From IMG/VR virus record IMGVR_UViG_3300028654_000001, positions 124,001 through 188,000 of that record: a stretch of DNA of 64,000 nt; one strand, 5' to 3'. Numbering within the stretch: the stretch's first letter is position 1; the number at the start of each line of letters is the position of its first letter. Positions 2,743 to 58,751 of this stretch are shown here, piece after piece. The notes under the pieces were generated by a model. That model searched no databases. It saw only the letters and a list, made by a program, of their open reading frames with translations, and had not been told where the DNA came from. The translations under genes were made by a program, and so were the position numbers.

Positions 2743-3459
2743 TCAGTAGTGAAGCTTCTCGTTGAGCTCGTTGATGAGCTCCTGCTCACGAGGTGAGATA
2801 GTTACCCGTAGTCGGATACCAACCCGCCTTGCTGTTTCGAGTATTGCTGCATCAGTCATGGTCATAAAGTTGGTGGCCTGATCTTCAATCAAGGTCCAGT
2901 TAGGGGTGTTGTTGAGGAACCTGAATGCTATCAGCGTACAGTACTCGGCCTTCTCAGTGGTACTGAGGCTACTTTGAGTCTCAGGGATCTCTTTTGTACC
3001 AGGCTCTCGAGAGGGTCTGATCTCATCCCAACACTCTTCAATTGGTTCGTCAGCCATCAGAAAACACCTCGAGTCACTTGAGCTATGGGATCTTTCAACA
3101 GTAGTCATTTTTTTGTATCCAGGTCGTGACATTTCTCTTACCAGAGCCTCGTCGGAGTACCTCAGCTTCTGAGTCCTCCACGAGTCCTCAACTACGCGTT
3201 GACCTGCAGGCCTCCACCGAGCAGGTGTGTCAGGGTCACCATGGATGTCTTCAACCTCTGGAGGGATCAGGCACTTGGTGAAGAGCCAGTCCAAACAGAA
3301 CTCACATACACTGAACTTGTACTTAGTACAATCATCAAGGGCACCCGCTCCGTTCCCAGGTGTCGAGTGAAAGCTCCCTTGGACCTCAGCGTCGACAAGT
3401 CCTACTCGTGGAGTGTTCGGTTCTAGTTGTAATGAGTGTCCACATACATTACAGGTCAC
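2743..3459 (-). CDS. hypothetical, CxxC zinc-finger N-terminus plus internal IESYW-type tag (possible fusion)
   Basis: ORF track; CNVC...CEFC; internal MADEPIEECWDEIRP from 3057. Confidence 0.75.
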   Translation of the reverse strand: MTCNVCGHSLQLEPNTPRVGLVDAEVQGSFHSTPGNGAGALDDCTKYKFSVCEFCLDWLFTKCLIPPEVEDIHGDPDTPARWRPAGQRVVEDSWRTQKLRYSDEALVREMSRPGYKKMTTVERSHSSSDSRCFLMADEPIEECWDEIRPSREPGTKEIPETQSSLSTTEKAEYCTLIAFRFLNNTPNWTLIEDQATNFMTMTDAAILETARRVGIRLRVTISPREQELINELNEKLHY

Positions 3460-3826
3460 TTAGTAGCCTTTCAAATCGGGTTGGTCGAGAACCTCTATAA
3501 GTCTCAGGACTCTCGTTTAGATAGGTATCGAGAATATCCAGAGCTAGATCACTCCAGTACTTCCTAGAGTTCAACTTCCTCATGGTCGGATCAGGGTTGG
3601 CCCTGTTGAACTTCACTCCAGTACTCTTGCACCCCCAGATACCAGTGTAGGTGACAATATTCGGGTCAGATTTCATATTGCGAAGATAGGCGACAAACCA
3701 AACTCTCTGAGGGTTTCGACCTAAGTCTACTACGATAGTCACCTTGTACAGCTTGGAGGCCTCAGAATCTCTGACGATAATATCCCGAACTTGTTGAATT
3801 CGTTGGTCTAGAACTTCAAGAGGCAT
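3449..3826 (-). CDS. hypothetical with C-terminal PTRFER tag
   Basis: Ends RPTRFERLLSDL; overlaps neighbours by a few nt. Confidence 0.85.
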   Translation of the reverse strand: MPLEVLDQRIQQVRDIIVRDSEASKLYKVTIVVDLGRNPQRVWFVAYLRNMKSDPNIVTYTGIWGCKSTGVKFNRANPDPTMRKLNSRKYWSDLALDILDTYLNESPETYRGSRPTRFERLLSDL

Positions 3827-4322
3827 CACTCTCGTCCTTGATGATCCGCTCGAATCGCGTGGGCCTGGACTCTACAGGTGGACTACCCGTAGCTCTAACT
3901 AAGTGAGCATGACGTAGATCCATATATAGATAGCTTGTTGGTCCACAGTTATCGCAATAACAAGGACCTATGGGTATAATGTAGTTCTCTGCACTCAAGG
4001 GAGTCTCAGTGAGGAATCCCATACCCATAAATGGTTGCAAGTCAGGTGACTCGCTAATCTCGTTCATCATGGTGGTAGACTCCGATTGGATACGCTCGAA
4101 GTCTTCATCAGTATACACTCCCGGATCAGTGGTATCTAATACGTTGGTGGTTACTTGGAAAGGTCCGCAGCGAGTAGTAACCTCCACACGACCCTCTTGA
4201 ACCGTTGAGACTCTTGTAGCCAATTGATTACAGATGCAGCAACGAACGGCGTACTTCTCAAGGAGTTCCTTGGTGGTGAGGATCATCAAGTCAATCATCC
4301 GGATATTGGTAGTAGCCGACAA
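3816..4322 (-). CDS. Cys-rich hypothetical with C-terminal PTRFER tag
   Basis: CCICN...CYCDNC; ends RPTRFERIIKDESDAS. Confidence 0.85.
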   Translation of the reverse strand: MSATTNIRMIDLMILTTKELLEKYAVRCCICNQLATRVSTVQEGRVEVTTRCGPFQVTTNVLDTTDPGVYTDEDFERIQSESTTMMNEISESPDLQPFMGMGFLTETPLSAENYIIPIGPCYCDNCGPTSYLYMDLRHAHLVRATGSPPVESRPTRFERIIKDESDAS

Positions 4323-4824
4323 TGTTGATCAACTTTTCAATGAACTTGTAGGCACCAACAATAACGTCATCACTTTGGCTCACACTCTCAGGGCCACTTA
4401 TCTGATGGTCATCGGTGAAAGTGGTGATCACCTTCTCAAGGGATCTGAGTTGAGCCAGGGTAAGAGACTTTCGCACTCGAGGAACATTAACCCCGAAGTC
4501 CATGGGTTCTAGATCAGAGTTAACAATCGGAATCCCGAGCTCACGAGCTCGTTTGACCTCCCTCTTGACCCCCGATGAGGATTCCCAGCCCGGGACAAGC
4601 ACTAGGAGGTCACAGGTCTCTAGTAGGTCCAGAGCTGCCTCCAACCAGAACTCGTAGTCCTGAGTGTCAGCAAAGGGGCTCCAGAACACGTTTGGACAGA
4701 CCGGTACCCAGCCCGCCTTAAGTACGTCGGAGATCACCAGTCGAGCCTTGGAGATGTTCTCCTCAATCTCATCAGCAGAGCCACTATAAGCACCGGAGAC
4801 GAAAGCACGTCCTTTTGTCTTCAT
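4291..4824 (-). CDS. DUF4406/DUF1937-like (nucleoside 2-deoxyribosyltransferase-fold) protein
   Basis: FVSGAYSG...CPN...W...CDLLVLVPGWESSSGVKREVKRARELGIPI, recognised from memory. Confidence 0.75.
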   Translation of the reverse strand: MKTKGRAFVSGAYSGSADEIEENISKARLVISDVLKAGWVPVCPNVFWSPFADTQDYEFWLEAALDLLETCDLLVLVPGWESSSGVKREVKRARELGIPIVNSDLEPMDFGVNVPRVRKSLTLAQLRSLEKVITTFTDDHQISGPESVSQSDDVIVGAYKFIEKLINIVGYYQYPDD

Positions 4825-4970
4825 AGATCACCGAGCTCCAATACTCATACATTCAGTCACTGAGACGTGTTCTATGGGCCAAAAGAGAATGACGGTAAGA
4901 GTAGCTCTATCACTCGCATTGTCAACTCCTGAGACGTAGGGGTTCGACTAGCTTAGCAGGGTACCCTACC

Positions 4971-5261
4971 TCAAGAAGCCTTGGCCCCTTCGAAGGGCTT
5001 CATCTCCTGGCACTTGGTAGCGATCGGGGGCAGGTTCGGAAGCTGAGTCTGACATGCTTGATAGAGAGTGTACGCAAGATTAGTGAGTTGAGCTAACGCA
5101 ATGACTTGCCCTTCACTCTCGGTTTTTCTGGATTGCCCTTTGATTAAACTTATGAGGTGTAGATAGTAGTTGATCGCATCATCCCCTCTGATGAAGACCC
5201 CACGCCAATCATCACCAAACCTCATGCCACCGGTCTCTGGTCGTTCCTGTTCATCATTCAT
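4971..5261 (-). CDS. hypothetical phage protein (MRFGDDWRGVFIRGDDA motif)
   Basis: 3' part of the track ORF; start chosen at the ATG coupled to the upstream stop. Confidence 0.7.
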   Translation of the reverse strand: MNDEQERPETGGMRFGDDWRGVFIRGDDAINYYLHLISLIKGQSRKTESEGQVIALAQLTNLAYTLYQACQTQLPNLPPIATKCQEMKPFEGAKAS

Positions 5262-5760
5262 TTTCATCATCCTCGAGTATGCGGTCAAAACGAGTAGGCC
5301 TGACCTGCTCGGTAGCAGAGAGTCCAACGTTGGTAGCCCTGCGAACCATAGGGGCAATCTCAAGCTCTTGGTACTGTAGTGCCTCGTAGACCCCAGTGTG
5401 GGTATCACAGAAGAAGGGACCTTGATCGAAGGACCAGGATTGAACCTCAGCCCCAAAACCCAAGTTTGGGATCTCCTCACCTATGGCGGCCAGCTCACGC
5501 TGAATCCAACTTACAGTACGTCTACCAATATCCTCCATAGTCAAGTGATCACTTCTGAAAATCTCTGAGGAGGTCATTCGCTGACGGCTTAGTGCGGCGG
5601 TCGGTGTCCAAGCAAACTTGGACAGCTCACCCATCTTGATTCGTAAAATCTGGATGTCGGGAGCGAGGTCTCGATACCTCCGAGTAGCCATGGCTCCGCA
5701 AACACTGCAATGAGGAGCTATATCAACGAGTAGGTTGTAGAGTGCAAAGGTGTCAGGCAT
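5254..5760 (-). CDS. Cys-rich hypothetical with C-terminal PTRFDR tag
   Basis: CSVCG; ends RPTRFDRILEDDENE; resembles the 3816-4322 architecture. Confidence 0.85.
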   Translation of the reverse strand: MPDTFALYNLLVDIAPHCSVCGAMATRRYRDLAPDIQILRIKMGELSKFAWTPTAALSRQRMTSSEIFRSDHLTMEDIGRRTVSWIQRELAAIGEEIPNLGFGAEVQSWSFDQGPFFCDTHTGVYEALQYQELEIAPMVRRATNVGLSATEQVRPTRFDRILEDDENE

Positions 5761-5778
5761 GTTCGAGTCTTGGGTGTA

Positions 5779-5994
5779 CTAGTCTGTTTTCTGACACTTG
5801 GGGCATTGAGGTACCACCCCCTGACCCGAGTAATTATGGAGCTTACACACCCAACTACGCCAGGGAGCCCTCGCATTGACAGAGTTGTTGATGAAGTAGA
5901 CTAGAGCACATGCTTGATCAGAGTGGTTGCAATTGGCAGCTAGTTTTTTGATCTCATCAAGAAGATCCCTATCACTTACTTCTTTGGTTGGCAT
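5779..5994 (-). CDS. small Cys-rich hypothetical
   Basis: 3' part of the track ORF; CxxxxC and CPKC motifs. Confidence 0.6.
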   Translation of the reverse strand: MPTKEVSDRDLLDEIKKLAANCNHSDQACALVYFINNSVNARAPWRSWVCKLHNYSGQGVVPQCPKCQKTD

Positions 5995-6280
5995 GATCAT
6001 TCTCGTCGGGTGAGGGGCATTTGTATCCTGGGTAGTTGGCGTTTGGTGGCTCATTGCTGAGCCTGAGTAGGTAGAGGGTCTCACTAACCACTTGCTCGAG
6101 ATCTATGGAATCGAAAGGGAATGCACCAGGCTTGGTTCCCTCTCTGTCGAGTCTAGCACCCCAGTCTGGGGCCATTAGTCCTCGCTCGTCTAGGTCATTG
6201 ATGAGCTGGACACCTAGCAAGCGTAGTTGGGACCTCAGGATGATTCGAGCCGTTTCCAAGTCAATTGGCGGTGCTTCCAC
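5972..6280 (-). CDS. hypothetical protein
   Basis: ORF track; fits the minus-strand gene train. Confidence 0.6.
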   Translation of the reverse strand: MEAPPIDLETARIILRSQLRLLGVQLINDLDERGLMAPDWGARLDREGTKPGAFPFDSIDLEQVVSETLYLLRLSNEPPNANYPGYKCPSPDENDHANQRSK

Positions 6281-6361
6281 ACGTGTACCTTACCTGGATT
6301 TGGGCGGGAGTTCAACGAGTAAGTACTTGCTGAGTACCAGAACTTCAGATAATCTTCCTTG

Positions 6362-6640
6362 ATGCTCACTGCTTGGCTGGCCAGACGCCGAAAAGAGAAG
6401 GCAGCTAAACTGGAGAAGGACTGGCTCCTCAAGCGAGATGGTTTTATCTGCTACTGTAGAGAGTGCGGAGCTACTTTGAATAATGCCTGTCAGGTCATCG
6501 ACGAGGATCGATGTCAGTTCAGATGCCCGTGCGGGATGACCAGCATATTCGGGTTCCTTAACTATCCGGTCCCCATACTGTTCTCCTGCTCCCCCGACGA
6601 CCAATTCCCACCCAAAGATGTTGCTCCGATTCTCCCGTGA
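6362..6640 (+). CDS. zinc-ribbon protein
   Basis: CRECG...CPCG; TTGCTG-N17-TAATCT lies 6 nt before the ATG. Confidence 0.7.
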   Translation: MLTAWLARRRKEKAAKLEKDWLLKRDGFICYCRECGATLNNACQVIDEDRCQFRCPCGMTSIFGFLNYPVPILFSCSPDDQFPPKDVAPILP

Positions 6641-7885: not shown

Positions 7886-8131
7886 TCAGGGCTCCTCGAA
7901 GATGTGGAGCTTGCCAACAGGAACGTCCTCACAACGCACCGTAGCCATCGTCTGGAGACTGGTACCCCAACCAGAGGTAGCGAAGCATATAGGTGCCCCA
8001 GGGTACTTCATGAAGGTAATGCTGTTAGGAGTCGGATTCCTTGACCTGTAGCTCAGGTAGGCCACTAGAATGGAAAGTGTCCCAACAATTACCAAACCAA
8101 CTATCAACTTTACTCTGAACATACTGATCAC
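7886..8131 (-). CDS. small membrane-anchored protein
   Basis: N-terminal hydrophobic helix LIVGLVIVGTLSILVAYL. Confidence 0.75.
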   Translation of the reverse strand: MISMFRVKLIVGLVIVGTLSILVAYLSYRSRNPTPNSITFMKYPGAPICFATSGWGTSLQTMATVRCEDVPVGKLHIFEEP

Positions 8132-8496
8132 ATCCCTAGGTTCTCCAACTCGAGTAAGATCTGGTCAGGCTCATTGGTTAACCTAGTGGCAGTTATACGC
8201 CTACGACTAAGACTCTGAAAGTAACTCCATAACGGACCTGAAGGTGTTTTACTTGCATCCGATCGTTTGATCATGAACAACATACCACAAGAGCACTTGA
8301 ACCATATCTCTTGTTCCACTACGGTGATTTCTCCGTGGCCTTGAAAACTATGGTTAGCAGCTGCACGCAATAAAATAGGAATAGTGGTGAAGGTTGGTAT
8401 CCCAAGATTAGCCTCAGGCACCTTGGGGGATGCTGGTGGGAGTCGACCAGGACGGATCACCATCCACATAGATTCGATGTCATCGTCCTGAGTCAC
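8128..8496 (-). CDS. hypothetical with N-terminal IESYW-type tag
   Basis: MTQDDDIESMWMVIRP; H...CSC zinc-like motif. Confidence 0.85.
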   Translation of the reverse strand: MTQDDDIESMWMVIRPGRLPPASPKVPEANLGIPTFTTIPILLRAAANHSFQGHGEITVVEQEIWFKCSCGMLFMIKRSDASKTPSGPLWSYFQSLSRRRITATRLTNEPDQILLELENLGM

Positions 8497-8653: not shown

Positions 8654-9430
8654 TCATGGATCAACCCCAATCGCGTGCTTGTGCATCGGAGACAGGTTAT
8701 CTTCCTGCTTGCATCGGTTGCAAGATCCCATTGTGAGAACAGCTTTGGTCAACTCCTCGTTAGAGCTATCGACGGTTCCAATCGGGTAACAGAGTCGACT
8801 CTCACCCGCGACAACTACCCCCTCATGAGTCACTGACGGAGTACAGAACCCTGCTAGCCCAATACATGCTCTAGCCCTCAAGAGCTTGATTGCCATAGGC
8901 ATCGACTTGTACGAACGAGTGAGGGATCTGAGGTTGAAGCTACTGGGGGCCGAGCGAGGACTTAATCCCTTGGGGTCAAACGTGGGTCTTGAGGCTCGAC
9001 CGATGGTGGACAAGACTTGAAGTTTGTCCACGTAGGTTATCTTCGGGTGCTCTAACTTCAGAGGCTTGCGTGGGTAGTACCGATCGTCATTAGTGACTTG
9101 AAAAAGGACATGCTTCCAATCATCTCGAAGGAGAGCATCCCTGAGTTCCTTGTTCTCTAGCCAGAGCCCATGAGTCAGAATACTAAGGATCCAACCTCTC
9201 CTAACTACCTGTGAAGCCATCTCGACGAGAAGTGGGTTATCCGTGCACTCCCCTCCTGATAGCATCATCATCACCGGGATCCCAGCCTTGATAACCTCAC
9301 ACTCTGCTCGTTCGGTGAAATCGAGTGCTCGCATGAACGTGTTCATATCCATGTGCTCTCCGGAAGGGAGAGCATCCTCGAGACAGTGGGTGCAGCCCAT
9401 CGAGCAGGAATTTGTTATTTTGATGATCAT
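8654..9430 (-). CDS. radical SAM domain protein
   Basis: CSMGCTHC (CxxxCxxC), LSGGECT motif, C-terminal C...CNRC cluster. Confidence 0.9.
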   Translation of the reverse strand: MIIKITNSCSMGCTHCLEDALPSGEHMDMNTFMRALDFTERAECEVIKAGIPVMMMLSGGECTDNPLLVEMASQVVRRGWILSILTHGLWLENKELRDALLRDDWKHVLFQVTNDDRYYPRKPLKLEHPKITYVDKLQVLSTIGRASRPTFDPKGLSPRSAPSSFNLRSLTRSYKSMPMAIKLLRARACIGLAGFCTPSVTHEGVVVAGESRLCYPIGTVDSSNEELTKAVLTMGSCNRCKQEDNLSPMHKHAIGVDP

Positions 9431-9845: not shown

Positions 9846-10370
9846 TTAGTCGTTCTCGAGTATCCGTTCAAAGCGAGTCGGCCTTGGTCCAGTATACGAT
9901 TCAGAAAGCCTATTCGCCGGCATGTTATCAATCAACCGTCTCAAGTACCCCATCATAAACCCTACGGGTACGGTCATCTCGGATCCATTGAATTGGGGAG
10001 TGAGTTCCATGAGCGAGTAGCTTAGTGAAAGTACCCAAGTCAGGATTAGGTCTCCGGTGGTCGGGTGTTCAACATAGGTTGGCAAGGTGTGTTGCACCAC
10101 ATAGAGGGTGCCGTCCTGAGCTCCTGGGTTGTTAGACCACAGGACTAGATCTGCTAACAGACTCTGAACTTGATCTGCTATCACAAACCTTCTACCCTCG
10201 AAGGTCAGGCGGGGTAGCCGAAGGATATTCCCAATAGCGATCTCATGAGTAGTGGATACAGTTAGGTTTCGATTGATCCAAAGCACCTCATGGACCGTAG
10301 ATTCACGGGTGAAGTCTGCCACTTCCGAGTTCTGGCCACTGAGCACCCATAAACGGAGATTGACGGGCAC
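9846..10370 (-). CDS. hypothetical with C-terminal PTRFER tag
   Basis: Ends RPTRFERILEND. Confidence 0.85.
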   Translation of the reverse strand: MPVNLRLWVLSGQNSEVADFTRESTVHEVLWINRNLTVSTTHEIAIGNILRLPRLTFEGRRFVIADQVQSLLADLVLWSNNPGAQDGTLYVVQHTLPTYVEHPTTGDLILTWVLSLSYSLMELTPQFNGSEMTVPVGFMMGYLRRLIDNMPANRLSESYTGPRPTRFERILEND

Positions 10371-10808
10371 TCAATTACTCTTCCCACCGTCAATGACTCT
10401 GAAGGTTCGATGACGGATCCATTCCCTCTTACTCCCGAGTGGAGCTCTCCTGAACTCCCCATTACAGACATGACACTTACTGAACCACGACCTGGTCTTC
10501 AGTGATAGGGTATTGGTCAGAACCCCTTTGCATCCAGGCGCCGGACAGGGAGGCCCCACGATCTCAAAGAGAGGGTAAGGAACCTTCTCGGTGAACTCCT
10601 CCCCGTTGATCGCCGTGTCCGTGTAGTAGAACTCTTGTCCGCACTGAATACACGCATCCAACCTAACTAGCTTGAAGCTCTTTGGGTCTCTTCGAACCAA
10701 CAGAAGTCCAGTTTTACACACTGGGCATACCGATCGAAAGGCACTATCCCCATCAGCTCTTTCGAGCTCAGCGTGGACAACTCTGATGTGAGTCTTGGAA
10801 GGGTTCAC
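10371..10808 (-). CDS. double zinc-ribbon protein ending in FRVIDGGK
   Basis: CPVC..CIQC and CPAPGC..CHVC. Confidence 0.8.
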   Translation of the reverse strand: MNPSKTHIRVVHAELERADGDSAFRSVCPVCKTGLLLVRRDPKSFKLVRLDACIQCGQEFYYTDTAINGEEFTEKVPYPLFEIVGPPCPAPGCKGVLTNTLSLKTRSWFSKCHVCNGEFRRAPLGSKREWIRHRTFRVIDGGKSN

Positions 10809-10922
10809 TTGAGGGACCTCAGGAACTCGTAGATCTTAGTCAACAAGTCCATCTTGACACGGAAGGGTGGTGTTCGGGTTCTGGATGGGCATTAAAGCCC
10901 ACTACACCGAAACCCAATCGGA

Positions 10923-11174
10923 TCAGTTGGGCTTAGCTTCCTCGAATTGAGCGAGGACGGTGGTCAGCTCTCGAAGAGTCCCGTGAGCTTCTTCTGGGGC
11001 CTCTGGGGTTATCCAGTCCTGTAGTGCGGACAGGTGAAGCTTAGCCTTTTCGACTAGGGCTTGCCTGCGGGAACCTTCAGCCTGCGAGGCTTCCATGAGG
11101 AGTTTACTAGCTACATCGGCGTGGACTTCGGCTCTAGCTTGGGCAGGATCAATTGGATTTCTTGTCTGGGTCAT
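10923..11174 (-). CDS. hypothetical helical protein
   Basis: ORF track; 8 nt from the upstream gene. Confidence 0.7.
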   Translation of the reverse strand: MTQTRNPIDPAQARAEVHADVASKLLMEASQAEGSRRQALVEKAKLHLSALQDWITPEAPEEAHGTLRELTTVLAQFEEAKPN

Positions 11175-11182
11175 GATCAGGA

Positions 11183-11635
11183 TTACGTAGCAGCTTCAGT
11201 TTCCTCACCATCTTCGTTTGGTTTTGGTAGTTGTTCCGAGGACACCAACTCCTCAGCAAGATCACTCATGACCTCTTCACCAGTGATATAGGGTCTTCCG
11301 GTGATGTGTCCGATCAGTTCGGCCACAACTACGGCATCAGGGGTTCTAAGACCTAGTTTCTCCCCTACATAGGCCCAATGTAAGAGTTGACCGTTGTTCG
11401 TTATCAAAGCCGAGGGGCGTGGTTCTTGATTCAGTGACGTCACCAACCAACACTTCTCCGAAACCCCCATCAAGTCCTTAGCCCCATCACTAAAACTCGT
11501 GAGTTCCGTGAACATCAAGTCATATTTTGTACCATTTCCCGGACAGTAACTAACAAATGTACAAGCCCCACTTACCTCCTTGCGCTTGATTCCAGACTCA
11601 ACAGTAGGCATAGTTCGAACATCTAATAGTGGCAT
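11183..11635 (-). CDS. hypothetical protein
   Basis: ORF track; TTGAGT-N17-TAAACT lies 8 nt upstream of the ATG. Confidence 0.8.
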   Translation of the reverse strand: MPLLDVRTMPTVESGIKRKEVSGACTFVSYCPGNGTKYDLMFTELTSFSDGAKDLMGVSEKCWLVTSLNQEPRPSALITNNGQLLHWAYVGEKLGLRTPDAVVVAELIGHITGRPYITGEEVMSDLAEELVSSEQLPKPNEDGEETEAAT

Positions 11636-11772
11636 AACTCAAAAGTTTAGCATAAGTCGGTACTTAACTCAAGATCTCTGTGAGTCTATGGTGTACAAGA
11701 TCAGCGGAAATCTTGTCATCCCATCTGAATCTGCCACAGGTGACATAAACCTTTTATAGAAATACACCGAGT

Positions 11773-12420
11773 ATGGATGACCTGAGGATCATCAGCCAAG
11801 TGGCCAAGCGAGTGTCAGCTGCGAGCGTGCCACCTGGAAAGGGCTTCTATACGGGCAAGGACAATACCTTCCACGTGTTCCGAAGTTCAACTCACCTGCA
11901 GGTCCGAGATCTGACCCTCGCCGGCAAACGCGGTAAGACCGTGCCGGAGGTTACGATCATCCTGAACGACAACTACTACAAGGGTGACACTGATGAGTGG
12001 TTCGAGACTGTGATGGAGCAACTGGCCAAGTGTGACACTTGGGCTGATGTCAAGAAGGTGGCCGCTGATGCCAAAGAGGCCGCCCCCGATCACGCAGTAG
12101 TCCTTCACGAGCAGAGTATCAAGGCTATTGAAGTGGCCCCCGCAGGTTCTGAAATCAAGTTCAAGACCCTAGCAGGTGAAGAGATCACAGCTAGTCCTGT
12201 TGAGTTCTACGTCCTACATCGATTTTGGTTTGGTCGAGTTGAGGGTGACCCGAAGAAGCCTGGGTTTGCCCAAGACACTGGCTACTGGTCGAACAACAAG
12301 CAGAGTGCAGCCATATTCTACGCCTACCTGAAGGATAATATGTCCAAGGTAATGAAGATGGGCATCCGCGAGTTACGAGAGCTTTGGAGTGAGCTGAAGG
12401 TCAGCTACCGTTACCACTGA
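11773..12420 (+). CDS. hypothetical with N-terminal MxDLxIIxxVxxRV tag
   Basis: MDDLRIISQVAKRVSAA; 215-aa ORF. Confidence 0.85.
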   Translation: MDDLRIISQVAKRVSAASVPPGKGFYTGKDNTFHVFRSSTHLQVRDLTLAGKRGKTVPEVTIILNDNYYKGDTDEWFETVMEQLAKCDTWADVKKVAADAKEAAPDHAVVLHEQSIKAIEVAPAGSEIKFKTLAGEEITASPVEFYVLHRFWFGRVEGDPKKPGFAQDTGYWSNNKQSAAIFYAYLKDNMSKVMKMGIRELRELWSELKVSYRYH

Positions 12421-12426
12421 GGCCCC

Positions 12427-12705: not shown

Positions 12706-12711
12706 GTCTGA

Positions 12712-16611: not shown

Positions 16612-16618
16612 GAGGTTT

Positions 16619-16936: not shown

Positions 16937-16941
16937 GCTCA

Positions 16942-49182: not shown

Positions 49183-49258
49183 CTAACCAACCTAAATCTT
49201 TGTAATTAGGGCGAACCACTTCCCAATAGGACTCGATGCTGTCTTCAGGTTTAGTCAC
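49160..49258 (-). CDS. 32-aa tag-only micro-protein
   Basis: GTG 1 nt after the upstream stop; MTKPEDSIESYWEVVRPNYKDLGWLDGYRIKD. Confidence 0.6.
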   Translation of the reverse strand: MTKPEDSIESYWEVVRPNYKDLGWLDGYRIKD

Positions 49259-49259
49259 T

Positions 49260-50735
49260 CTAGGCTGGATCCTCTAAAGAGAAGTCATCCTCAGAAGGCT
49301 CCTGGTTCCTACCCTCTATTGAATCCCTCGGAGGCTGGTAGGCACGTCTCTCGGTTGGGTAGAGCTCCTCTGGGCGAGGGAACGTGCCTGGGGCACTCAT
49401 AGGTAGGAACTCCACTCGGAAGTTAAGTAGTACTCTCCTACGCCAGTCATCCTCCCCATAGTGGTTGAAGGTTCTCCTTCCTAACTCATCAAGAGAGGTC
49501 TGTAGATTAGTGAGAACCCGCCTGTTGAGGGGTTCTGCCATGTTATCGGATGTCTCAATGATTCCATTGAGCAGTAGGGCAACTCGCCTGAGGTTGATAC
49601 GGGTGTCATACTCCCGCTCATCATCGGAACGTCTCTCAGGTAACTCTAGGTCTGCTGTATTATGGCCTAGAAACATGGTACCAGCAGCAGCCATTCGTCT
49701 CTCATGTTGGGGTACCTCGTTCCTATTGATCTCCGACAATCTTGTTAGAGCATGACCATCATTCTCGCTTGTGAAGTATCTGCGAATCTCATCCTGAGTT
49801 GGTAGGTGTCCTACCATCCCCATGTACTGCTCAGTGTACGCTAGGATCCTACGATCTGCAGCAGTACTGTCATGGGCATGAGTCCCCTGTCGATGAACAC
49901 TCCCTCGACGAATATGGTAGGTCACCTCAAAGGTGTTGAGGGTATCTTGCCACCAATTAGTACGCATGTTGTGGGCAGCACCTTGAGCTTCAACCCAAGT
50001 GAACAACTCGGTGATGATCGAATCAATGTGCTCATCGTCCCCAACCCTGTCGACGAGTTCTTGAAGGTTGCTCAGTAGTAGGGCCAATCTTCGCATATCA
50101 AGAATGGATTGGCTTTGGGACTCGCCCACTTCCTGAGGGGCTGCTACTTCTTGGGGTAAACTTGGAGACTGGATATCATCATCGAGACCCCCTACACGAA
50201 CAATCAAGTCTAGGATTCGTTCCTGAACCCTCATGCTCGAGATGAAGTGCCCACGCATAATGGATATCGGTGGGTATGAGCGGTTCTCCTTGCAGTACTC
50301 TAGAACGTAGTCACTGATCTGCTTATCTATCTCAGAAATGTTTTGAGTAGGAGTGTTTTGGTGCAGCCTTCTCAAGTACGCCCAGAGCTCACCCCCAGTC
50401 AGTGTTCGACTGTACAACTGACCCTGCACCACTCGGTCTAGCAGACTAACACACCCAGGTTTTGACCACTCTTCGAAGGTTATACGAATATCCTCGTAGT
50501 CAGGGTACTCATCCGTATTCCGGTGTTGCCGATTCAAATGAGTAATGATCTGGTTAGCATTCTCAGTCTGGGAAATGTACTCAGGGGGCGGATTTGCAAA
50601 CACTCGAGTCAGAATGTTGAGTATCTGTTGCCCACTAGGGTTCCATTGGTCCCGAGCCTCTTGGGGTACCCCTGGGGAGGATCGCAGTCCCTGTCGATGA
50701 TCCCAGTAGGATTCAACTTCATTATCGTCTGGCAT
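49260..50735 (-). CDS. large helical repeat protein with N-terminal IESYW-type tag
   Basis: MPDDNEVESYWD; internal repeat MRRLALLLSNL / LRRVALLLNGI. Confidence 0.85.
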   Translation of the reverse strand: MPDDNEVESYWDHRQGLRSSPGVPQEARDQWNPSGQQILNILTRVFANPPPEYISQTENANQIITHLNRQHRNTDEYPDYEDIRITFEEWSKPGCVSLLDRVVQGQLYSRTLTGGELWAYLRRLHQNTPTQNISEIDKQISDYVLEYCKENRSYPPISIMRGHFISSMRVQERILDLIVRVGGLDDDIQSPSLPQEVAAPQEVGESQSQSILDMRRLALLLSNLQELVDRVGDDEHIDSIITELFTWVEAQGAAHNMRTNWWQDTLNTFEVTYHIRRGSVHRQGTHAHDSTAADRRILAYTEQYMGMVGHLPTQDEIRRYFTSENDGHALTRLSEINRNEVPQHERRMAAAGTMFLGHNTADLELPERRSDDEREYDTRINLRRVALLLNGIIETSDNMAEPLNRRVLTNLQTSLDELGRRTFNHYGEDDWRRRVLLNFRVEFLPMSAPGTFPRPEELYPTERRAYQPPRDSIEGRNQEPSEDDFSLEDPA

Positions 50736-51213
50736 GATCATCCTCAGAATTAGACAAGAGATCACTCATCTCTTGAAAGTAACTCAAGCGTGGATCTTCA
50801 GGCCCAATGTTGAGGTCTTGGACTCTACTATCAATCACGTCTATCAACCTGGTGAAGTTGTAGCGGATCCCAGCTGAGTTCAAGAGATTACGTAATCGAA
50901 CCGTTGTATATACAAGCTCTCGAAAGAGAGACCCGTTTGATCTCTCTGTCCCGCTTAAGTGGTGCGAGTAGGGTGGGTCTGTAACGACGGAAGTGAAGGT
51001 TACGTTTGATTCTTCAACTTCAACAGGGGAGTCATCACCATAATCAATGGTGTAACGAGTCACGTAGGGGGTTGACTCCTCATCGGACTCAACTGGGTCT
51101 TCTAAAGCAACCACGTCGACAATAGGCACATTGGTTAGGGTACTCAGATCCCGCTGGGGTCGAAGTCCTTCCCAAAAGGACTCGATGTCATCAGTGTCAG
51201 TTGAGGTACCCAT
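50722..51213 (-). CDS. hypothetical with N-terminal IESYW tag
   Basis: MGTSTDTDDIESFWEGLRP. Confidence 0.85.
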   Translation of the reverse strand: MGTSTDTDDIESFWEGLRPQRDLSTLTNVPIVDVVALEDPVESDEESTPYVTRYTIDYGDDSPVEVEESNVTFTSVVTDPPYSHHLSGTERSNGSLFRELVYTTVRLRNLLNSAGIRYNFTRLIDVIDSRVQDLNIGPEDPRLSYFQEMSDLLSNSEDDHARR

Positions 51214-51297: not shown

Positions 51298-51660
51298 ATG
51301 CCAACCGAGGAAAAGAATCTTGAGCTGACACTCTTAGGAATCAAGGTGGCTCGAAGGCCATTTGATCAGTCACGACCCGGGCTCTATTGGTACACAACCC
51401 GTGGCGGCTACAACATGAATATTTTCAAGAATCTGGCTAATATTGACAACCAGAAACCCTATGAGTGGTATTGCAGTACCGTTGGTTGCTCCTTCACAGC
51501 TAGTGGTAAAGAGTCATCGTTAGATGAAGCTATTAAAGAAGCTCATGTGCGTCTTGCTAACCACATTCTAGAGAAGTCCAATGTGGAGCAGACTGCCATA
51601 AACTTTCTCCCGAATAGTACCTCACGACCAACTCGATTTGAACGAGAACCGGTACTGTAG
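51298..51660 (+). CDS. hypothetical with C-terminal PTRFER tag
   Basis: Ends SRPTRFEREPVL; TTGACT-N18-TAACTA-N6-ATG. Confidence 0.85.
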   Translation: MPTEEKNLELTLLGIKVARRPFDQSRPGLYWYTTRGGYNMNIFKNLANIDNQKPYEWYCSTVGCSFTASGKESSLDEAIKEAHVRLANHILEKSNVEQTAINFLPNSTSRPTRFEREPVL

Positions 51661-51778: not shown

Positions 51779-52309
51779 CTAAAGGTACCGGATCATCTTC
51801 GTGAGAAGATCGAAGATCATCGGAGACTCAAAGGAAACCAGGATCACGTCATCCAAAGTTTCGTCCGTTTTCAGGAAAGCCTTGCACTCTCTTACTGCTA
51901 TCTCACAGGCTTTGTCTATTGGGTAACCGTAAGCTCCAGCACTGATGCTTGGGAAAGCAATCGAAGTACCGTACTGAGCTGCAAGCTTCAAACACTCTCG
52001 GTAACAAGAGGCTAAAAGATCAGCCTCTTGGTTAAACCCGCCCTTCCAGATGGGACCAACGGTATGAATCACGTGCCTGCAAGGCAGGCTGAAGGCTGGG
52101 GTGATGCGTGCTTCTCCGGTTGGGCACCTTACCCCAGGCTTCACTGGTATGACCGCCTTGCAAGCTTCTAGGAGCCTTGGACCTGCTGCAGCATGGATTG
52201 CATGGTCTACTCCACCACCTCCAAGCATTGCCTCATTGGCAGCATTGACAATAGTATCGACGTTAAGTTTTGTGATGTCAGCTTCGAGAGCCCTGAGTAT
52301 ACTAGGCAT
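51779..52309 (-). CDS. macro-domain O-acetyl-ADP-ribose deacetylase / ADP-ribosyl hydrolase (YmdB-like)
   Basis: DITKLNVDTIVNAANEAMLGGGGVDHAIHAAAGP...HVIHTVGP...FPSISAGAYGYP. Confidence 0.95.
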   Translation of the reverse strand: MPSILRALEADITKLNVDTIVNAANEAMLGGGGVDHAIHAAAGPRLLEACKAVIPVKPGVRCPTGEARITPAFSLPCRHVIHTVGPIWKGGFNQEADLLASCYRECLKLAAQYGTSIAFPSISAGAYGYPIDKACEIAVRECKAFLKTDETLDDVILVSFESPMIFDLLTKMIRYL

Positions 52310-55555: not shown

Positions 55556-55756
55556 ATGCCATCAGATACCAAGAAAAACAAGCACGAGCATACGTTCAAA
55601 GATGGAGCAACCTTGAATTTAACTGCTAGTTCCAAGGGTCTGAAGATTGGTTGGCAGGAAGTTGGTAAGAGTAAGCATCCTGCAGTTACCTTGACTTGGA
55701 AGACAGTGAATCGTCTGAGTCGTCACCGCATGAAGCCAAAGACCGTTGTGGGGTGA
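55556..55756 (+). CDS. small basic hypothetical
   Basis: CCGGTG-TACTGA-N5-ATG. Confidence 0.7.
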   Translation: MPSDTKKNKHEHTFKDGATLNLTASSKGLKIGWQEVGKSKHPAVTLTWKTVNRLSRHRMKPKTVVG

Positions 55757-55757
55757 T

Positions 55758-56177
55758 ATGTCCGATATCATCTGGATGCCCGTCACCAGAATTCTATCAA
55801 CAGACCTTATGGTGTTGGGGGTAAAGTATCTCTTCGATTGGGATCGAAGGGTCTGGGTAGAGCATCAAGATGGTTGCTATGATGGTATACAATGGCACAC
55901 CATGTTCCTCTGTCGCGAAGTCGACGGTAAGAGTCAGTTCTGGCTTGAGGTTGTCCCAGCTACCGCCAAGTTACTGAGTGACTGTGGTCTTCGTGATGAG
56001 CATCTACTCAGAGCTATTGAACCAATACCACCTTGGCCGTCCAAGGTGGTGATGTTCTACATGGAGACCCAAGTAGCCGCTGCTCTGGTTGAATACCAAC
56101 CCGTGAAGAGTGTCTCGCCCTCTTGGTGGTTCAAGGATCTCCCTCCAACTCGGTTCGAGCGCGAAGATGTTATCTAG
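55758..56177 (+). CDS. hypothetical with C-terminal PTRFER tag
   Basis: Ends PPTRFEREDVI. Confidence 0.85.
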   Translation: MSDIIWMPVTRILSTDLMVLGVKYLFDWDRRVWVEHQDGCYDGIQWHTMFLCREVDGKSQFWLEVVPATAKLLSDCGLRDEHLLRAIEPIPPWPSKVVMFYMETQVAAALVEYQPVKSVSPSWWFKDLPPTRFEREDVI

Positions 56178-56791
56178 GCAGCAGTGGGGGGTGAGAACTC
56201 AGCCTTCCACCGAGTGAGTAACCTACTGCAGGCCTCACGATCTTCAGGGTCAGGCTTCTTGAAGAACTTGGTACTTGAGGTTACAGGCCACTCTTCAAGC
56301 TCGCAGCTGTCACTCAAGCGATATAGGAGGAGCTCACCTTTCCAGAACAGACCCTCATTTGATACATAGTAGCTACCATCACGAAGTGACAGACCCTCGT
56401 CAAGTGCAAAGGTCTCGTACCAACTTCGACTCAGCCTTCTGCAGATATCTGAATCTTCTTTCATCTCACGAACTTCTTGGAGTCGTTCGAACCCGAACGG
56501 GCCTTTATCCTTATCAACGAAGGCGATCTCTAGATTACCTCTAAAGATGACCCCACCCCTGGTAACGCTGTACCCCGAATCATACAGTCGATTTATAGCA
56601 CCAGTCCCGAATTTCTCCCTTGGTGGTAGGTCCTCGGGATCTTTGATGGTTTCCTTCTCCTTGGGTGGAGACGAGGGCTTATTGAAGGCCTCACTGAGCT
56701 CAATTCCCTTCTTATGACCAAGCCGGTAGACAAGGAGGTAAGATGCTAGTAGGAGTAACCCAACAGTAACTGATAGTGGAAACATAATCAC
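56174..56791 (-). CDS. membrane-anchored hypothetical
   Basis: N-terminal TM VTVGLLLLASYLLVY. Confidence 0.8.
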   Translation of the reverse strand: MIMFPLSVTVGLLLLASYLLVYRLGHKKGIELSEAFNKPSSPPKEKETIKDPEDLPPREKFGTGAINRLYDSGYSVTRGGVIFRGNLEIAFVDKDKGPFGFERLQEVREMKEDSDICRRLSRSWYETFALDEGLSLRDGSYYVSNEGLFWKGELLLYRLSDSCELEEWPVTSSTKFFKKPDPEDREACSRLLTRWKAEFSPPTAA

Positions 56792-57579
56792 TCCGGTAGT
56801 TCAAGCATCCAACTCTCCCAACCTGGGAGCGATAGGAACAAGTGGAGACCCAACAGCTCTTCGGCTGCTGGTACCTCCCAATCATGCACGCAAATGGGTT
56901 GGTTACGATCGAGATCGAACAGGGTTCGATTGCTCTTTGGGGACCTCTCCACCTTCGTTCGAGAGGTCAACAAGTAGCGACGGCCAGTGTCCTGGCCCAC
57001 GGTGACAAATTGGTTTGTCCTTCTAAAGTCTTCCAGCTGCCCCGGGTTCAAGAAGGTCTCTAGAACCTTCGTAGCTCGAATCTCAGCCTTGACGAATTCA
57101 GGGACGGGACAACCTCTATCAGGGACGGCTACGGTCGTAGCGGCTACAGCAAGGGCTGGCAACCTGATGGCATCCCAGTACTCTTCGATGCTCGCGGGTG
57201 AGGCACTAGGAGCCCTCGCGGGTAGTGGGTTGATCTTGTATTCTTGGAGGGTCCCGTTGGATAGCTTCACTACCGATACTTGATTTCTACCGGGCTTCAG
57301 TCTGGAAGTAAGGTGCTTAGCCACCTTGGTGATAGGTGCTTGCAGTTGGACAGTCACCCCCCTCTCTGTCCTACAGATTGACTCTAGAATCTGTGGGAAA
57401 GATTCAGGTGTTGCCCATGGTTTGAAGATCATCCCGCCCCTCAGAGCTCTTTTCCGGAAGGATTCCATAACCCTCAGCTCCTCGTTTGACAGGCTGTACA
57501 TGCGAAGGGAGGTCTCCGTTTGACTTACTGCTTCCAGTTGCAGATCTCCGTGAAAACTCGGAATGTACCACATCACCAT
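56788..57579 (-). CDS. hypothetical with internal IEEYW tag
   Basis: MWYIPSFHGD N-terminus; internal SIEEYWDAIRLP. Confidence 0.85.
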   Translation of the reverse strand: MVMWYIPSFHGDLQLEAVSQTETSLRMYSLSNEELRVMESFRKRALRGGMIFKPWATPESFPQILESICRTERGVTVQLQAPITKVAKHLTSRLKPGRNQVSVVKLSNGTLQEYKINPLPARAPSASPASIEEYWDAIRLPALAVAATTVAVPDRGCPVPEFVKAEIRATKVLETFLNPGQLEDFRRTNQFVTVGQDTGRRYLLTSRTKVERSPKSNRTLFDLDRNQPICVHDWEVPAAEELLGLHLFLSLPGWESWMLELPE

Positions 57580-58054
57580 CTTGATTTCTTTCCTCTAGGT
57601 TGCAAAATAACTTATCCACGCGGGCCTTGAGTATACCCTTTCTTTCAGGGAACTCAGTCAAATCCTGCAAAGCTATCAGGTCTTTCAGCTCCTGGGCTTC
57701 TGCTGCAGCTAACTGGGATCGTTGGGCTTCAAGGTGGATCTGGGATAGGGTGCTCATCTGAACATCCATATTCCGTTTTTGTTGTCTTGGATCTTGATAC
57801 TGGGTGACCCCGTTAAAGGTGATATCTCCAACAAACTCAACACCCCCATCATCACCCTCTTCAAAGCGAGCTCGCTTGATATCGTCCCTCGGAACACGCG
57901 GGGAGGCCTCGGCTCTCATAAGGGACTTTGCCACTTCACATAGACTGGCTACTGAAGCGAATCGAGTCCGCTTATCTGAGTTCAGCTTCTCAATCATCAG
58001 TTGACGGAGAGCATCGAGTGCGGTCTTCAAGTAACCACTTTCCTCAACTTCCAT
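57404..58054 (-). CDS. hypothetical helical protein
   Basis: ORF track; tail overlaps the next gene by 176 nt. Confidence 0.7.
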   Translation of the reverse strand: MEVEESGYLKTALDALRQLMIEKLNSDKRTRFASVASLCEVAKSLMRAEASPRVPRDDIKRARFEEGDDGGVEFVGDITFNGVTQYQDPRQQKRNMDVQMSTLSQIHLEAQRSQLAAAEAQELKDLIALQDLTEFPERKGILKARVDKLFCNLEERNQDGDVVHSEFSRRSATGSSKSNGDLPSHVQPVKRGAEGYGILPEKSSEGRDDLQTMGNT

Positions 58055-58160
58055 GAAGTCCAGCTCAGAATCAGCTTTTTTGTACACCGGTTACCCATTA
58101 CACCGAATGCCCCAAGAACGCAAGATATTGGGCTTCGGTGTAAACAGCCTGCTGTAAACA

Positions 58161-58751
58161 ATGGAGGACGACTTCGAAGAGTACTGGGCGGCTATCAGGC
58201 CTGAACGAAAACCGTCTATGAAGGATCTCCGGGACGAGCTCCTCAAGATTGCCAAACTTCGTGAAGAAGAGTGGGACTTGATGACCCATAGGAACTACCC
58301 TTCACCTCCCGAGAGCTTGTTCGAGGAGTCGCGTGAGGAACCCTTCTTCAATGGTCCAGGCGAGAGTATTCCGGCAGATTTACCACTGGTTGTCAATATT
58401 GGGAACCCTGATCTGGGAGATGTAGCAACCAGAGAGTACATCGAGTCTATTCTCCACACTTACTCTGAGGTGCATCAATTTCATATAGATGGAGGCGGAT
58501 CTGTTCGAGTTGACTACCCTCCATCAATTATTGGCGACGGTCCGATCTCTGGGGGTGGATCGCTTCTCATCACTACAGGTGAGGGTTTACAAGCTTCTAG
58601 CTGGGGTAGTACCAATGAGCTCAGGCTTGAACTACAGAATAACTCAGAATTCAGAGTTTTACAGGATCGAGTTACCAGACTCGAACAAGAAAATCGAGAA
58701 CTGCGATCTCGTGTGAATACCCTAGCATTAGCCATAAGGAATCGACGATGA
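58161..58751 (+). CDS. hypothetical with N-terminal IESYW-type tag and C-terminal coiled coil
   Basis: MEDDFEEYWAAIRP; LQDRVTRLEQENRELRSRV. Confidence 0.85.
   Translation: MEDDFEEYWAAIRPERKPSMKDLRDELLKIAKLREEEWDLMTHRNYPSPPESLFEESREEPFFNGPGESIPADLPLVVNIGNPDLGDVATREYIESILHTYSEVHQFHIDGGGSVRVDYPPSIIGDGPISGGGSLLITTGEGLQASSWGSTNELRLELQNNSEFRVLQDRVTRLEQENRELRSRVNTLALAIRNRR

Follow-up and report, generated by a model that had tools for sequence, protein, structure and literature searches.

Terminal peptide motifs in the 64-kb window

The window analysed here, a stretch of 64,000 nucleotides, is part of a 512,571-bp rhizosphere huge-phage contig. Ten of its ORFs start with an acidic-aromatic peptide of approximately 18 residues, [DE][DE]xIE[SE][YF]W[ED]G[ILV]RPxRxP (the N-tag), of which one is a 32-aa remnant and one carries a half-tag; one further copy is truly internal. 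Seven other ORFs end in a different peptide, PTRFER plus a short tail and then the stop (the C-tag). The tagged ORFs are as follows.

2743-3057 (−): N-tagged ORF, 104 aa (MADEPIEECWDEIRPSREP, tag 2995-3054); the true gene inside the longer mechanical ORF 2743-3459.
3449-3829 (−): C-tagged ORF, ending in RPTRFERLLSDL and a stop.
3816-4322 (−): C-tagged ORF, ending in RPTRFERIIKDESDAS and a stop; paralogue of 5254-5760.
5254-5760 (−): C-tagged ORF, ending in RPTRFDRILEDDENE and a double stop.
8128-8496 (−): N-tagged ORF, 122 aa; tag VTQDDDIESMWMVIRPGRLP at 8431-8490 (HMM score 35 bits); just downstream of a radical-SAM-like ORF (8654-9430).
9846-10370 (−): C-tagged ORF, ending in RPTRFERILEND and a stop.
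25714-26562 (−): N-tagged ORF, 282 aa; tag at 26497-26556 (NEDPIEEYWSDVRPDR).
26578-27045 (−): N-tagged ORF, 155 aa; tag at 26983-27042 (VDDSIESDWGLIRPNR); paralogue of 25714-26562 (24% identity).
47953-48399 (−): C-tagged ORF, ending in HPTRFEREPVI and a stop; directly downstream of the N-tag gene cluster.
48497-48847 (−): N-tagged ORF, 116 aa; near-consensus tag MTDDIESYWEGLRPPRKP at 48788-48847 (44 bits).
48847-49182 (−): N-tagged ORF, 111 aa; tag at 49108-49167 (TDSIESYWEVVRPQ).
49160-49258 (−): 32-aa ORF with an intact tag (49190-49249).
49260-50735 (−): 491-aa ORF with a conserved half-tag (MPDDNEVESYWDHRQGLR, 50670-50729); the body holds short HTH-like repeats.
50722-51213 (−): N-tagged ORF, 163 aa; tag at 51139-51198 (DTDDIESFWEGLRPQR).
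51298-51660 (+): C-tagged ORF, ending in RPTRFEREPVL and a double stop; divergent from the N-tag gene cluster.
55746-56177 (+): C-tagged ORF, ending in PPTRFEREDVI and a stop, the same ending as the tail of a RecA-core ATPase described below.
56788-57579 (−): 263-aa ORF with the internal copy (ASIEEYWDAIRLP, 57142-57201), sitting in a Pro/Ala/Ser linker between two domains.
58161-58751 (+): N-tagged ORF, 196 aa; tag MEDDFEEYWAAIRPERKP at 58161-58220; coiled-coil-like C-terminus.

The initial annotation had listed 11 N-tag copies, nine at or near the N-terminus and two internal, and this observation is confirmed: all 11 exist. Eight (8128-8496, 25714-26562, 26578-27045, 48497-48847, 48847-49182, 49160-49258, 50722-51213 and 58161-58751) match the strict pattern [DE]x[IVLF]E[SED][YFMDW]Wxx[IVL]RP within 3-25 residues of the preceding stop. 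The remaining entries require correction. In 49260-50735 the acidic-IESYW half is kept but a 3-residue insertion displaces GxRP; this half-tag is conserved in the orthologue from the related locus L011, and the tag HMM scores only 3 bits. The copy in 2743-3459, listed as internal, is N-terminal, since an independent gene caller calls the 104-aa ORF 2743-3057, which starts MADEPIEECW, and its orthologue in locus L002 starts 7 residues after a stop. Only the copy in 56788-57579 is truly internal (residue ~131), reading IRL instead of IRP, while its L022 orthologue has IRP. Finally, 49160-49258 is a truncated remnant of a 69-79-aa tagged gene that is present in relatives (L011:3430-3636, P0043 and P0050).

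Two hundred shuffles gave 0.0 N-tag and 0.01 C-tag matches, against 8 and 7 observed. Codons vary synonymously (ATC/ATT, GAA/GAG, five Arg codons, three Pro codons), so the conserved entity is a peptide and not DNA. The bodies are unrelated by BLASTP, except the adjacent paralogues 25714/26578, start sites agree with independent gene calls of 163, 491, 111, 116 and 196 aa, and stop-codon recoding is not indicated. The claim that some bodies are membrane proteins is not supported, as no N-tagged protein has a TM-like segment at the threshold used. The claim that no ORF carries both tags holds in the window, and also across all clade loci (0 observed against about 3 expected, P~0.04). What had been missed is that PTRFER is itself a strictly C-terminal tag of the same kind.

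Distribution and modularity of the two tags

The N-tag recurs elsewhere in the genome and in related contigs of 145-510 kb. A profile search of 1.84 billion proteins found 47 tagged clusters, with the Ile of the tag at residue 5-11 in 42 of 47, and at least 27 unrelated body clusters of 63-590 aa that share nothing but the tag. No genuine copy was found in 185,579 bacterial and archaeal genomes, or in 115 kb of three outgroup huge phages. The C-tag is more abundant, marking at least 46 other unrelated body clusters, and sits 10-15 aa before the stop in 29 of 31 copies, with 4 to 9 residues between the tag and the stop. The two tags always co-occur in the same genomes, with about 20-25 N-tags against about 50-100 C-tags, and together they mark roughly a hundred unrelated small proteins; however, most loci were fetched through the tags themselves, which biases any density estimate.

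The N-tag is amphipathic, with a helical hydrophobic moment at the 96th percentile, and is followed by a Pro/Glu/Arg-rich linker. For the 163-aa protein of 50722-51213, AF2 models residues 7-16 as a helix and residues 21-51 as a disordered linker, although the AF2 models were of low confidence. The cargo is mostly acidic (median pI of bodies 5.1), soluble and unannotated. Evidence for modular addition comes from 25714-26562, whose C-terminal domain (residues ~178-277) exists as a stand-alone, untagged 113-aa protein in LR756511.1, and from P0031, which is a chimera of two tagged genes. The internal copy and double-tagged proteins, in which copies occur in tandem, suggest that the N-tag works away from a free N-terminus.

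Tag-like sequences in PolA and a RecA-core ATPase

Both motifs also have counterparts in enzymes of the same clade. A clade-specific 17-aa surface insertion after the ExoI motif of the PolA exonuclease domain is N-tag-like, with the consensus GPYEEYWDGPRP in about 65 closer homologues, and is absent from about 40 more distant ones. Its tag-likeness falls with PolA divergence, and C-tags near PolA occur only in the most tag-like sub-clade. However, the PolA insertion of the source genome is degenerate (VPV-EHWNDTRPD), and the insertion is phylogenetically broader than the tags, since loci L066 and L067 have it but no tags near PolA; the resemblance could therefore be convergent, or the loop could be ancestral. 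A RecA-core ATPase carries the tail EPEFDRS[KL]I[PK]TRFEREDVI, which is invariant in 14 homologues down to 38% identity. Most replisome-module proteins (DnaB-like helicase, primase, SNF2, AAA+) are untagged, as are the recognisable DNA-acting enzymes of the window (HNH endonuclease, restriction endonuclease).

A putative docking system and its alternatives

The initial annotation proposed that an acidic-aromatic amphipathic helix plus RP addresses a cargo set to a common destination, whether capsid, membrane compartment or host hub. This interpretation is partly supported. The motif is a transferable, protein-level, amphipathic peptide on many unrelated bodies, confined to one phage clade, and the two outcomes named beforehand as refuting it that could be checked were not observed: there is enrichment outside the window, and the tagged proteins do not share full-length homology. 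The destination is not established, and the absence of genuine copies from prokaryotic genomes argues against mimicry of a host motif.

Our preferred reading, held with no more than even confidence, is that the N-tag is a clade-specific short linear docking motif, comprising an N-capped acidic amphipathic helix (DD-I-E-S-[YF]-W-[ED]-G), an extended [ILV]-R-P-x-R-x-P element and a flexible Pro/Glu/Arg-rich tether. In this view it would attach at least 27 unrelated, mostly acidic, soluble small proteins to one common, most likely phage-encoded partner, while PTRFER(IL…|E[PD]V[IL])-COOH would do the same from the C-terminus for an even larger set, one tag per protein being sufficient. Because tag-like versions are built into two DNA-metabolism enzymes, the most likely shared destination would be the replication/recombination machinery or site of the phage, meaning a hub protein or a replication compartment, onto which the accessory proteins would hitch by carrying the same peptides. 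Our analysis shows the motif, its positional constraint, selection at the peptide level, modularity, clade restriction and the enzyme-embedded copies; that the peptide binds a partner at all, that this partner is phage-encoded, and that it is linked to replication are inferred, no receptor having been identified. Overall, these peptides look like an undescribed docking or address system.

An unlikely but possible alternative is a capsid targeting sequence of the T4 type, which would bind the scaffold, portal or shell interior such that tagged proteins are packaged and injected, the tag perhaps being cleaved by the prohead protease. The strict N-terminal position, the short acidic-aromatic peptide and the unrelated cargo are consistent with this, and the cargo genes sit among anti-defence-type accessory genes (Macro, Sie-like, GNAT and restriction endonuclease), a role that injected internal proteins such as T4 IPI* often have; jumbo phage heads, moreover, carry dozens of proteins. 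However, tag-like copies lie inside the PolA exonuclease domain and in an interdomain linker, where cleavage would destroy the protein, no conserved [LI]xE-type cleavage motif follows the tag, and the cargo is acidic. A strictly C-terminal second tag has no known precedent in capsid targeting sequences, and the tagged genes lie in accessory rather than structural regions, with no structural genes near the tagged clusters except one tail-fibre-like ORF.

Somewhat less likely, the peptides may be degrons for timed proteolysis by a ClpXP-, Lon- or FtsH-type machine or, in reverse, the variable bodies may bind targets while the tag recruits a common effector in the manner of an F-box or SOCS-box. 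Degrons are typically terminal, come in N- and C-terminal classes, as among ClpX recognition classes, and need an adjacent unstructured segment; both features are seen here, and the bodies are diverse, fast-evolving and tandemly arrayed in accessory regions. Against this, an essential PolA and a RecA-core ATPase carry conserved copies, double tags and internal copies occur, and the motif resembles no known bacterial degron and is absent from cellular proteomes.

It is doubtful that the two tags bind each other, like the docking domains at the N- and C-termini of PKS/NRPS subunits, with N-tagged acidic proteins pairing with C-tagged proteins. Their character is complementary (the N-tag has net charge −4, the C-tag core RPTRFER is basic, and both are amphipathic), they co-occur in the same genomes and they are never on the same protein. 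However, N-tagged and C-tagged genes are not significantly adjacent (P = 0.09), all tags are near-identical such that pairing would lack specificity, two-turn helices alone bind weakly, and the numbers are unequal.

It is also improbable that the tag has no address function and is merely the only surviving conserved segment of one rapidly diverging paralogous family. There are tandem arrays and local paralogues (25714/26578), and the remnant 49160-49258 and chimeric genes show active duplication and recombination, but the body clusters share nothing but the tag, the tag is added to a domain that stands alone untagged in another phage, tag-like copies occur in PolA and in an interdomain linker, and an independent C-terminal tag behaves the same way on 46 body clusters; a tag held constant while everything else decays itself implies a function. 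A nucleic-acid or translation-level signal (a downstream box, a recombination site or a nascent-chain arrest peptide) is the least likely, for although the distance from the start or stop codon is fixed and there is a loose resemblance to W…RP arrest peptides such as SecM and TnaC, all synonymous codons are used, so there is no DNA conservation, internal and tandem copies exist, and the C-tag-to-stop distance varies.

Several described systems share individual features with these tags. The T4 capsid targeting sequence of internal proteins IPI-III and Alt is likewise a short N-terminal peptide of about 10-18 aa with aromatic and acidic residues, shared by unrelated phage proteins and sufficient in principle as an address, but its sequence differs, and here there is no [LI]xE protease site, copies occur inside enzymes, a companion C-terminal tag exists, there are about 100 clients rather than a handful, and there is no link to structural genes. 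Sliding-clamp-binding peptides (the PIP box Qxx[ILM]xx[FY][FY], bacterial QL[SD]LF, and the T4 gp45-binding tails of gp43, gp55 and gp33) lie at protein termini or in loops, flanked by basic residues, and are shared by a polymerase and many unrelated clients, and the core I-x-x-[YF]-W fits their hydrophobic-x-x-aromatic-aromatic pattern. However, the N-tag has no conserved Gln, its invariant Glu and G-[ILV]-R-P extension are not part of any known clamp motif, PolA-type polymerases do not normally use clamps, and no clamp gene was identified here. The peroxisomal PTS1 (C-terminal) and PTS2 (N-terminal) signals are two alternative terminal peptides, mutually exclusive on unrelated cargo, but belong to a eukaryotic organelle system with receptors Pex5 and Pex7, whereas no compartment or receptor is known here. 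Protein import into the chimallivirus phage nucleus through the PicA/Imp1 pathway addresses a similar need, as jumbo phages must sort DNA polymerase, RecA-like and many accessory proteins to a replication compartment, but it is reported to have no conserved signal sequence, with recognition using surface patches (PMC11087766), in contrast to the clear linear motif seen here, if this clade builds a compartment at all. The acidic-aromatic C-terminal tails of T7 gp4 and gp2.5 and of bacterial SSB (DDDIPF, which DDDIESFW resembles) use an acidic cluster plus Ile and an aromatic residue as a common currency for replisome contacts, but need a free C-terminal carboxylate and sit on the hub, whereas the N-tag is N-terminal or internal and sits on the putative clients. 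Encapsulin cargo-loading peptides are also short, terminal and tethered by a flexible linker, loading unrelated cargo into an HK97-fold shell, but their consensus is different, their cargo genes neighbour the shell gene, and there are only a few clients.

Validation of the tagged ORFs and their genome

The observation of the initial annotation, an N-terminal acidic-aromatic peptide shared by eleven diverse ORFs, holds with four corrections of detail. All eleven listed copies are present, eight of which match the strict pattern [DE]x[IVLF]E[SED][YFMDW]Wxx[IVL]RP within 3-25 residues of the preceding stop, and ten of the eleven are N-terminal. The corrections concern the following ORFs:

49260-50735: the copy is a half-tag, MPDDNEVESYWDHRQGLR, which is conserved in its orthologue but scores only 3 bits with a tag HMM.
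2743-3459: the copy, listed as internal, is N-terminal; an independent gene caller on a public assembly calls a 104-aa ORF that starts MADEPIEECW, and the orthologue in a related contig starts 7 residues after a stop.
56788-57579: this is the only truly internal copy.
49160-49258: this 32-aa ORF is the stump of a 69-79-aa tagged gene seen in relatives, and overlaps the next tagged gene, 48847-49182.

Two hundred shuffles of the window gave 0.0 strict matches to the N-terminal tag (N-tag), against 8 observed. The codons beneath the motif vary synonymously, with five Arg codons and three Pro codons in use; the conserved entity is therefore a peptide, and not a DNA or RNA signal. Stop-codon recoding that would create false termini is not indicated: removing any one stop codon does not specifically heal the ORFs, which already fill 89% of the window. 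The termini are therefore real, and independent gene calls reproduce tagged ORFs of 163, 491, 111, 116 and 196 aa.

The window belongs to IMGVR_UViG_3300028654_000001, a contig of 512,571 bp that is found in several rhizosphere and soil metagenomes, as DNA only. GC content is 49.6%, and no tRNA genes lie in the window. The nearest GenBank relatives are uncultured huge phages, at 25-40% protein identity.

Anatomy, distribution and cargo of the N-terminal tag

From 67 non-identical copies, the profile of the N-tag is x-[DE]-D-[DS]-I-E-[SED]-[YF]-W-[ED]-G-[ILV]-R-P-x-R-x-P, in which I (64/67), E (65/67), W (67/67), R (66/67) and P (65/67) are near-invariant. Its helical hydrophobic moment is at the 96th percentile of window 12-mers. 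AlphaFold2 models residues 7-16 of one tagged family as a helix followed by about 30 disordered residues and then the body, albeit with low overall confidence (mean pLDDT 55). The 20 residues after the tag are enriched in Pro (16%), Arg (12%) and Glu (11%). Together, this is the architecture of a short linear motif on a flexible tether.

Searches with degenerate DNA patterns for the tag revealed further N-terminal copies elsewhere in the same genome (loci L004, L010, L016 and L030) and in related contigs of 39-407 kb. A profile of 28 tags was then searched against 1.84 billion representative proteins, returning 48 hits at E<=1e-3, of which 47 are genuine. The tag's Ile is at residue 5-11 in 42 of these 47, and the rest look like over-extended start calls. 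The proteins are 63-590 aa long, their bodies fall into at least 27 clusters unrelated by BLASTP, and all come from metagenomic contigs, the largest of them about 300 kb. By contrast, a scan of one genome from each of 185,579 bacterial and archaeal species found only two chance matches (…ISP and …FSP, both internal), which argues against mimicry of a host motif, and no copy occurs in 115 kb sampled from three outgroup huge phages. A word-indexed homology search with the tag region returned only orthologues, and a language-model atlas search with the tag peptide gave scores at noise level (0.47). Calibration of the scan patterns on the window suggests that the genome holds roughly 20-25 N-tags, about 45% of them in this window, and on the order of 50-100 copies of the C-terminal tag (C-tag) described below. 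These estimates are rough. Most loci were fetched through the tags themselves, which biases densities outside the window and the PolA loci.

Pfam and PHROGs searches of tagged proteins returned only weak, short HTH-repeat hits, DUF7448 and, as described below, a RecA core. None of the N-tagged proteins has a TM-like segment at the threshold used. Their bodies are acidic even without tag and linker, with a median pI of 5.1 (86% below 7) against 6.2 for window ORFs (P~9e-4), whereas C-tag cargo is not (6.3); the two tags therefore mark compositionally different protein sets. Four lines of evidence show that the tag is modular. First, the C-terminal domain of the 25714-26562 protein exists as a stand-alone, untagged 113-aa protein in LR756511.1. 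Second, one database protein (P0031) joins the N-terminal half of the 50722-51213-type protein to the C-terminal repeats of the 49260-50735-type protein, indicating recombination between neighboring tagged genes. Third, some database proteins (P0004, P0005 and P0009) carry two N-tags, either in tandem 24 residues apart or at residues 7 and 140. Fourth, the window ORF 56788-57579 carries the tag in an interdomain linker. The double-tagged proteins, with the truncated mini-ORF 49160-49258, show ongoing duplication and decay of tag-bearing genes.

A C-terminal tag and tag-like segments within replication enzymes

The PTRFER string, which the initial annotation mentioned as never sharing an ORF with the N-tag, is itself a positional tag. 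In 29 of 31 first-pass copies it lies 10-15 residues before a stop, in two sub-types, PTRFER-[IVL][LIV]-x(2-6) and PTRFER-[END][PD]-V-[IL], and all six Arg codons are used. A local HMM finds about 70 distinct copies in the loci of this clade, on 46 unrelated body clusters out of 61, and the C-tag co-occurs with the N-tag in every tag-bearing contig examined. No protein has both tags, with 0 observed against about 3 expected in the loci (P~0.04), and none of the 47 global N-tagged representatives has the C-tag. N-tagged and C-tagged genes are not significantly adjacent (P = 0.09), and a mean-distance test gave P = 0.7.

Tag-like segments were also found within enzymes. In a related 407-kb phage, the N-tag HMM hits a 1043-aa family-A DNA polymerase (PolA) at residues 188-204 with 27 bits, within an insertion directly after the ExoI motif DLETxGLD. 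Among 120 PolA homologues, about 65 closer ones carry this 17-residue insertion, with consensus …IRGPYEEYWDGPRPDR…, while about 40 more distant ones have a short 27-residue connection without it. The tag-likeness of the insertion declines with PolA divergence (mean HMM scores of 12.8, 10.4, 3.4 and below 0), and in the source genome itself the insertion is degenerate. The resemblance is statistically clear in one lineage, but could be ancestral or convergent. An AlphaFold2 model of the N-terminal 450 aa of PolA had a mean pLDDT of 36 and is unusable, and a PDB sequence search with the exonuclease region found nothing, only the polymerase domain aligning to solved structures.

The PolA neighborhood is a syntenic replisome module comprising a SNF2 helicase, a DnaB-like helicase, a primase zinc ribbon, PolA, an AAA+ ATPase and a thymidylate synthase. 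Many PolAs of the clade carry inteins; in the source genome's own module (locus L055, source positions 285846-309991), Intein/LAGLIDADG insertions occur in the SNF2 helicase and the AAA+ ATPase, and probably in PolA, which has 1416 aa against about 1000 aa in relatives (L055 positions 3337-6435, 9899-14149 and 15566-18511). In the tag-bearing sub-clade the module includes a 219-aa RecA-core ATPase, whose tail, …EPEFDRS[KL]I[PK]TRFEREDVI-stop, is invariant in all 14 homologues found, down to 38% identity, and is far more conserved than the ATPase core. The same ending is carried by unrelated small proteins, including window ORF 55746-56177. A tblastn search with this ATPase against GenBank phages gave no match. 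The PolA-anchored loci were not selected through the tags, and thus give an unbiased look: C-tags occur in the close, insertion-bearing genomes (L050, L051, L055, and weakly L054), but in neither of two divergent insertion-bearing genomes (L066, L067) nor in four insertion-less genomes (L063-L065, L056). A perfect phyletic link between the PolA insertion and the tags was not found, because the insertion is broader than the tags.

Interpretation and relation to known addressing systems

These data demonstrate two clade-specific terminal peptide motifs under strong peptide-level selection, appended modularly to about a hundred unrelated proteins, with tag-like versions embedded in two replication/recombination enzymes. 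That both are docking peptides which bind a common partner or partners is inferred from sequence. So too is a phage-encoded origin of that partner, which we consider most likely because the motif is absent from cellular genomes and restricted to one phage clade. Also by inference, the link to PolA and the RecA-core ATPase makes the replication machinery or replication site the leading candidate destination. We regard this reading as about as likely as not. The initial annotation's proposal, a peptide that addresses a cargo set to a capsid, membrane compartment or host hub, is thus only partly supported. A more tentative possibility within our reading is a real sorting system with two alternative linear signals, one N-terminal and one C-terminal, which would direct about 10% of the proteome, including the DNA polymerase and a RecA-like ATPase, to a replication compartment or replisome hub through dedicated phage-encoded receptors. 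If so, it would be the first linear-signal protein-sorting system known in a phage beyond the T4 capsid targeting sequence, and the counterpart that has been sought without success in nucleus-forming phages. In a search for receptors, the only ankyrin-like candidate was a 52-aa ORF with one weak motif.

Five alternatives remain. A T4-type capsid signal is unlikely, being disfavored by the enzyme-internal copies, the missing cleavage motif, the C-terminal companion tag and the acidic cargo. A degron or adaptor box is more doubtful still, pairing of the N-tag with the C-tag is improbable, and a decaying paralogue family is very unlikely. A DNA-level or translation-level signal is all but dismissed by the synonymous codon variation.

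In the way it would work, the system resembles several that are already described, but it is a member of none of these families. As in the T4 capsid targeting sequence, a short peptide is shared at the extreme N-terminus of unrelated proteins; however, the columns after the tag read R-P-x-R-[ED]-P, with no [LI]-x-E prohead-protease motif (a test that applies only to T4-like protease specificity), and copies inside PolA and in an interdomain linker could not be cleaved harmlessly. The core I-x-x-[YF]-W, with Y/F in 62 of 67 copies, fits the hydrophobic-x-x-aromatic-aromatic pattern of PIP-box and other clamp-binding peptides, but the conserved Gln three residues before the hydrophobic residue is absent, that position being D, E, T, P or A, and never predominantly Q. 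No clamp was identified: the unannotated ORFs beside PolA (221 aa and 397 aa) gave no Pfam or PDB match, although an AAA+ ATPase is present. As with the peroxisomal PTS1 and PTS2 signals, alternative N-terminal and C-terminal peptides lie on unrelated cargo and are mutually exclusive. The system also resembles encapsulin cargo-loading peptides and the acidic-aromatic tails of T7 replisome proteins in the way it would work, but no shell gene was identified. In chimalliviruses, recognition is through surface patches and no linear import signal is stated to exist (PMC11087766), whereas a linear motif is present here. Neither motif string occurs in 8.4 million full-text papers and preprints, and literature searches with motif strings gave nothing relevant.

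Shared terminal peptides are how cells and a few viruses address proteins, as with signal peptides, PTS1/2, the T4 capsid targeting sequence and clamp-binding motifs. For large phages with complex intracellular organization, no linear sorting or docking signal is known, and searches in nucleus-forming phages found none (PMC11087766). Two sharply defined peptides that mark roughly a hundred dark-matter proteins of one genome, plus two replication enzymes, thus offer a handle to group and study otherwise unannotatable huge-phage genes, a directly testable 20-mer bait for the receptor and hence the organizing hub or compartment of an uncultured phage, and, if portable, a ready-made tagging system.

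Neighboring genes of the tagged clusters

The window is an accessory region, in which the following features were located:

284-2530: CRISPR array, directly beside the first tagged ORF.
4291-4824: DUF1937/DUF4406/DUF7768 (nucleoside deoxyribosyltransferase-like) protein.
8654-9430: radical-SAM-like ORF.
45965-46687: GNAT acetyltransferase.
51779-52309: Macro domain protein.

It also holds a superinfection-exclusion gp17-like protein, HNH and restriction endonucleases, a ProQ-C-like protein and one tail-fibre-like ORF, and everything else is unannotated. The Macro, GNAT and deoxyribosyltransferase-like proteins flank the tagged clusters and give the region an anti-defence or host-takeover flavor. 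The CRISPR array comprises 28 identical 36-nt repeats (CTGGGGATCCTTGATTGGATCCCCGTTCATTGAAAC, with a palindromic core and a 3' ATTGAAAC) spaced 68-76 nt apart at 284-2272, followed by three to six degenerate repeats to about 2530; no cas family was found among the window ORFs. The radical-SAM-like ORF, which is below the Pfam cut-off and matches a PHROG Fe-S oxidoreductase, lies immediately upstream of the N-tagged ORF 8128-8496, with a 54-aa ORF between them. A RiPP-leader role for 8128-8496 was considered and dropped, because the tagged proteins are far too large and diverse and the radical SAM is not generally adjacent to the tags.

Related tag-bearing contigs carry further gene types. In a 304-kb huge-phage contig (locus L060, 13127-17883), an ABC transporter ATPase, a permease and an NMT1/OmpA-like substrate-binding protein are encoded, which look like auxiliary transport genes. 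In another tag-bearing contig (locus L062), a TnpB/Cas12f-like ORF, identified by a faint hit, and a resolvase/MerR-HTH ORF (1781-2953 and 4096-4515) are mobile-element genes among the tagged arrays.
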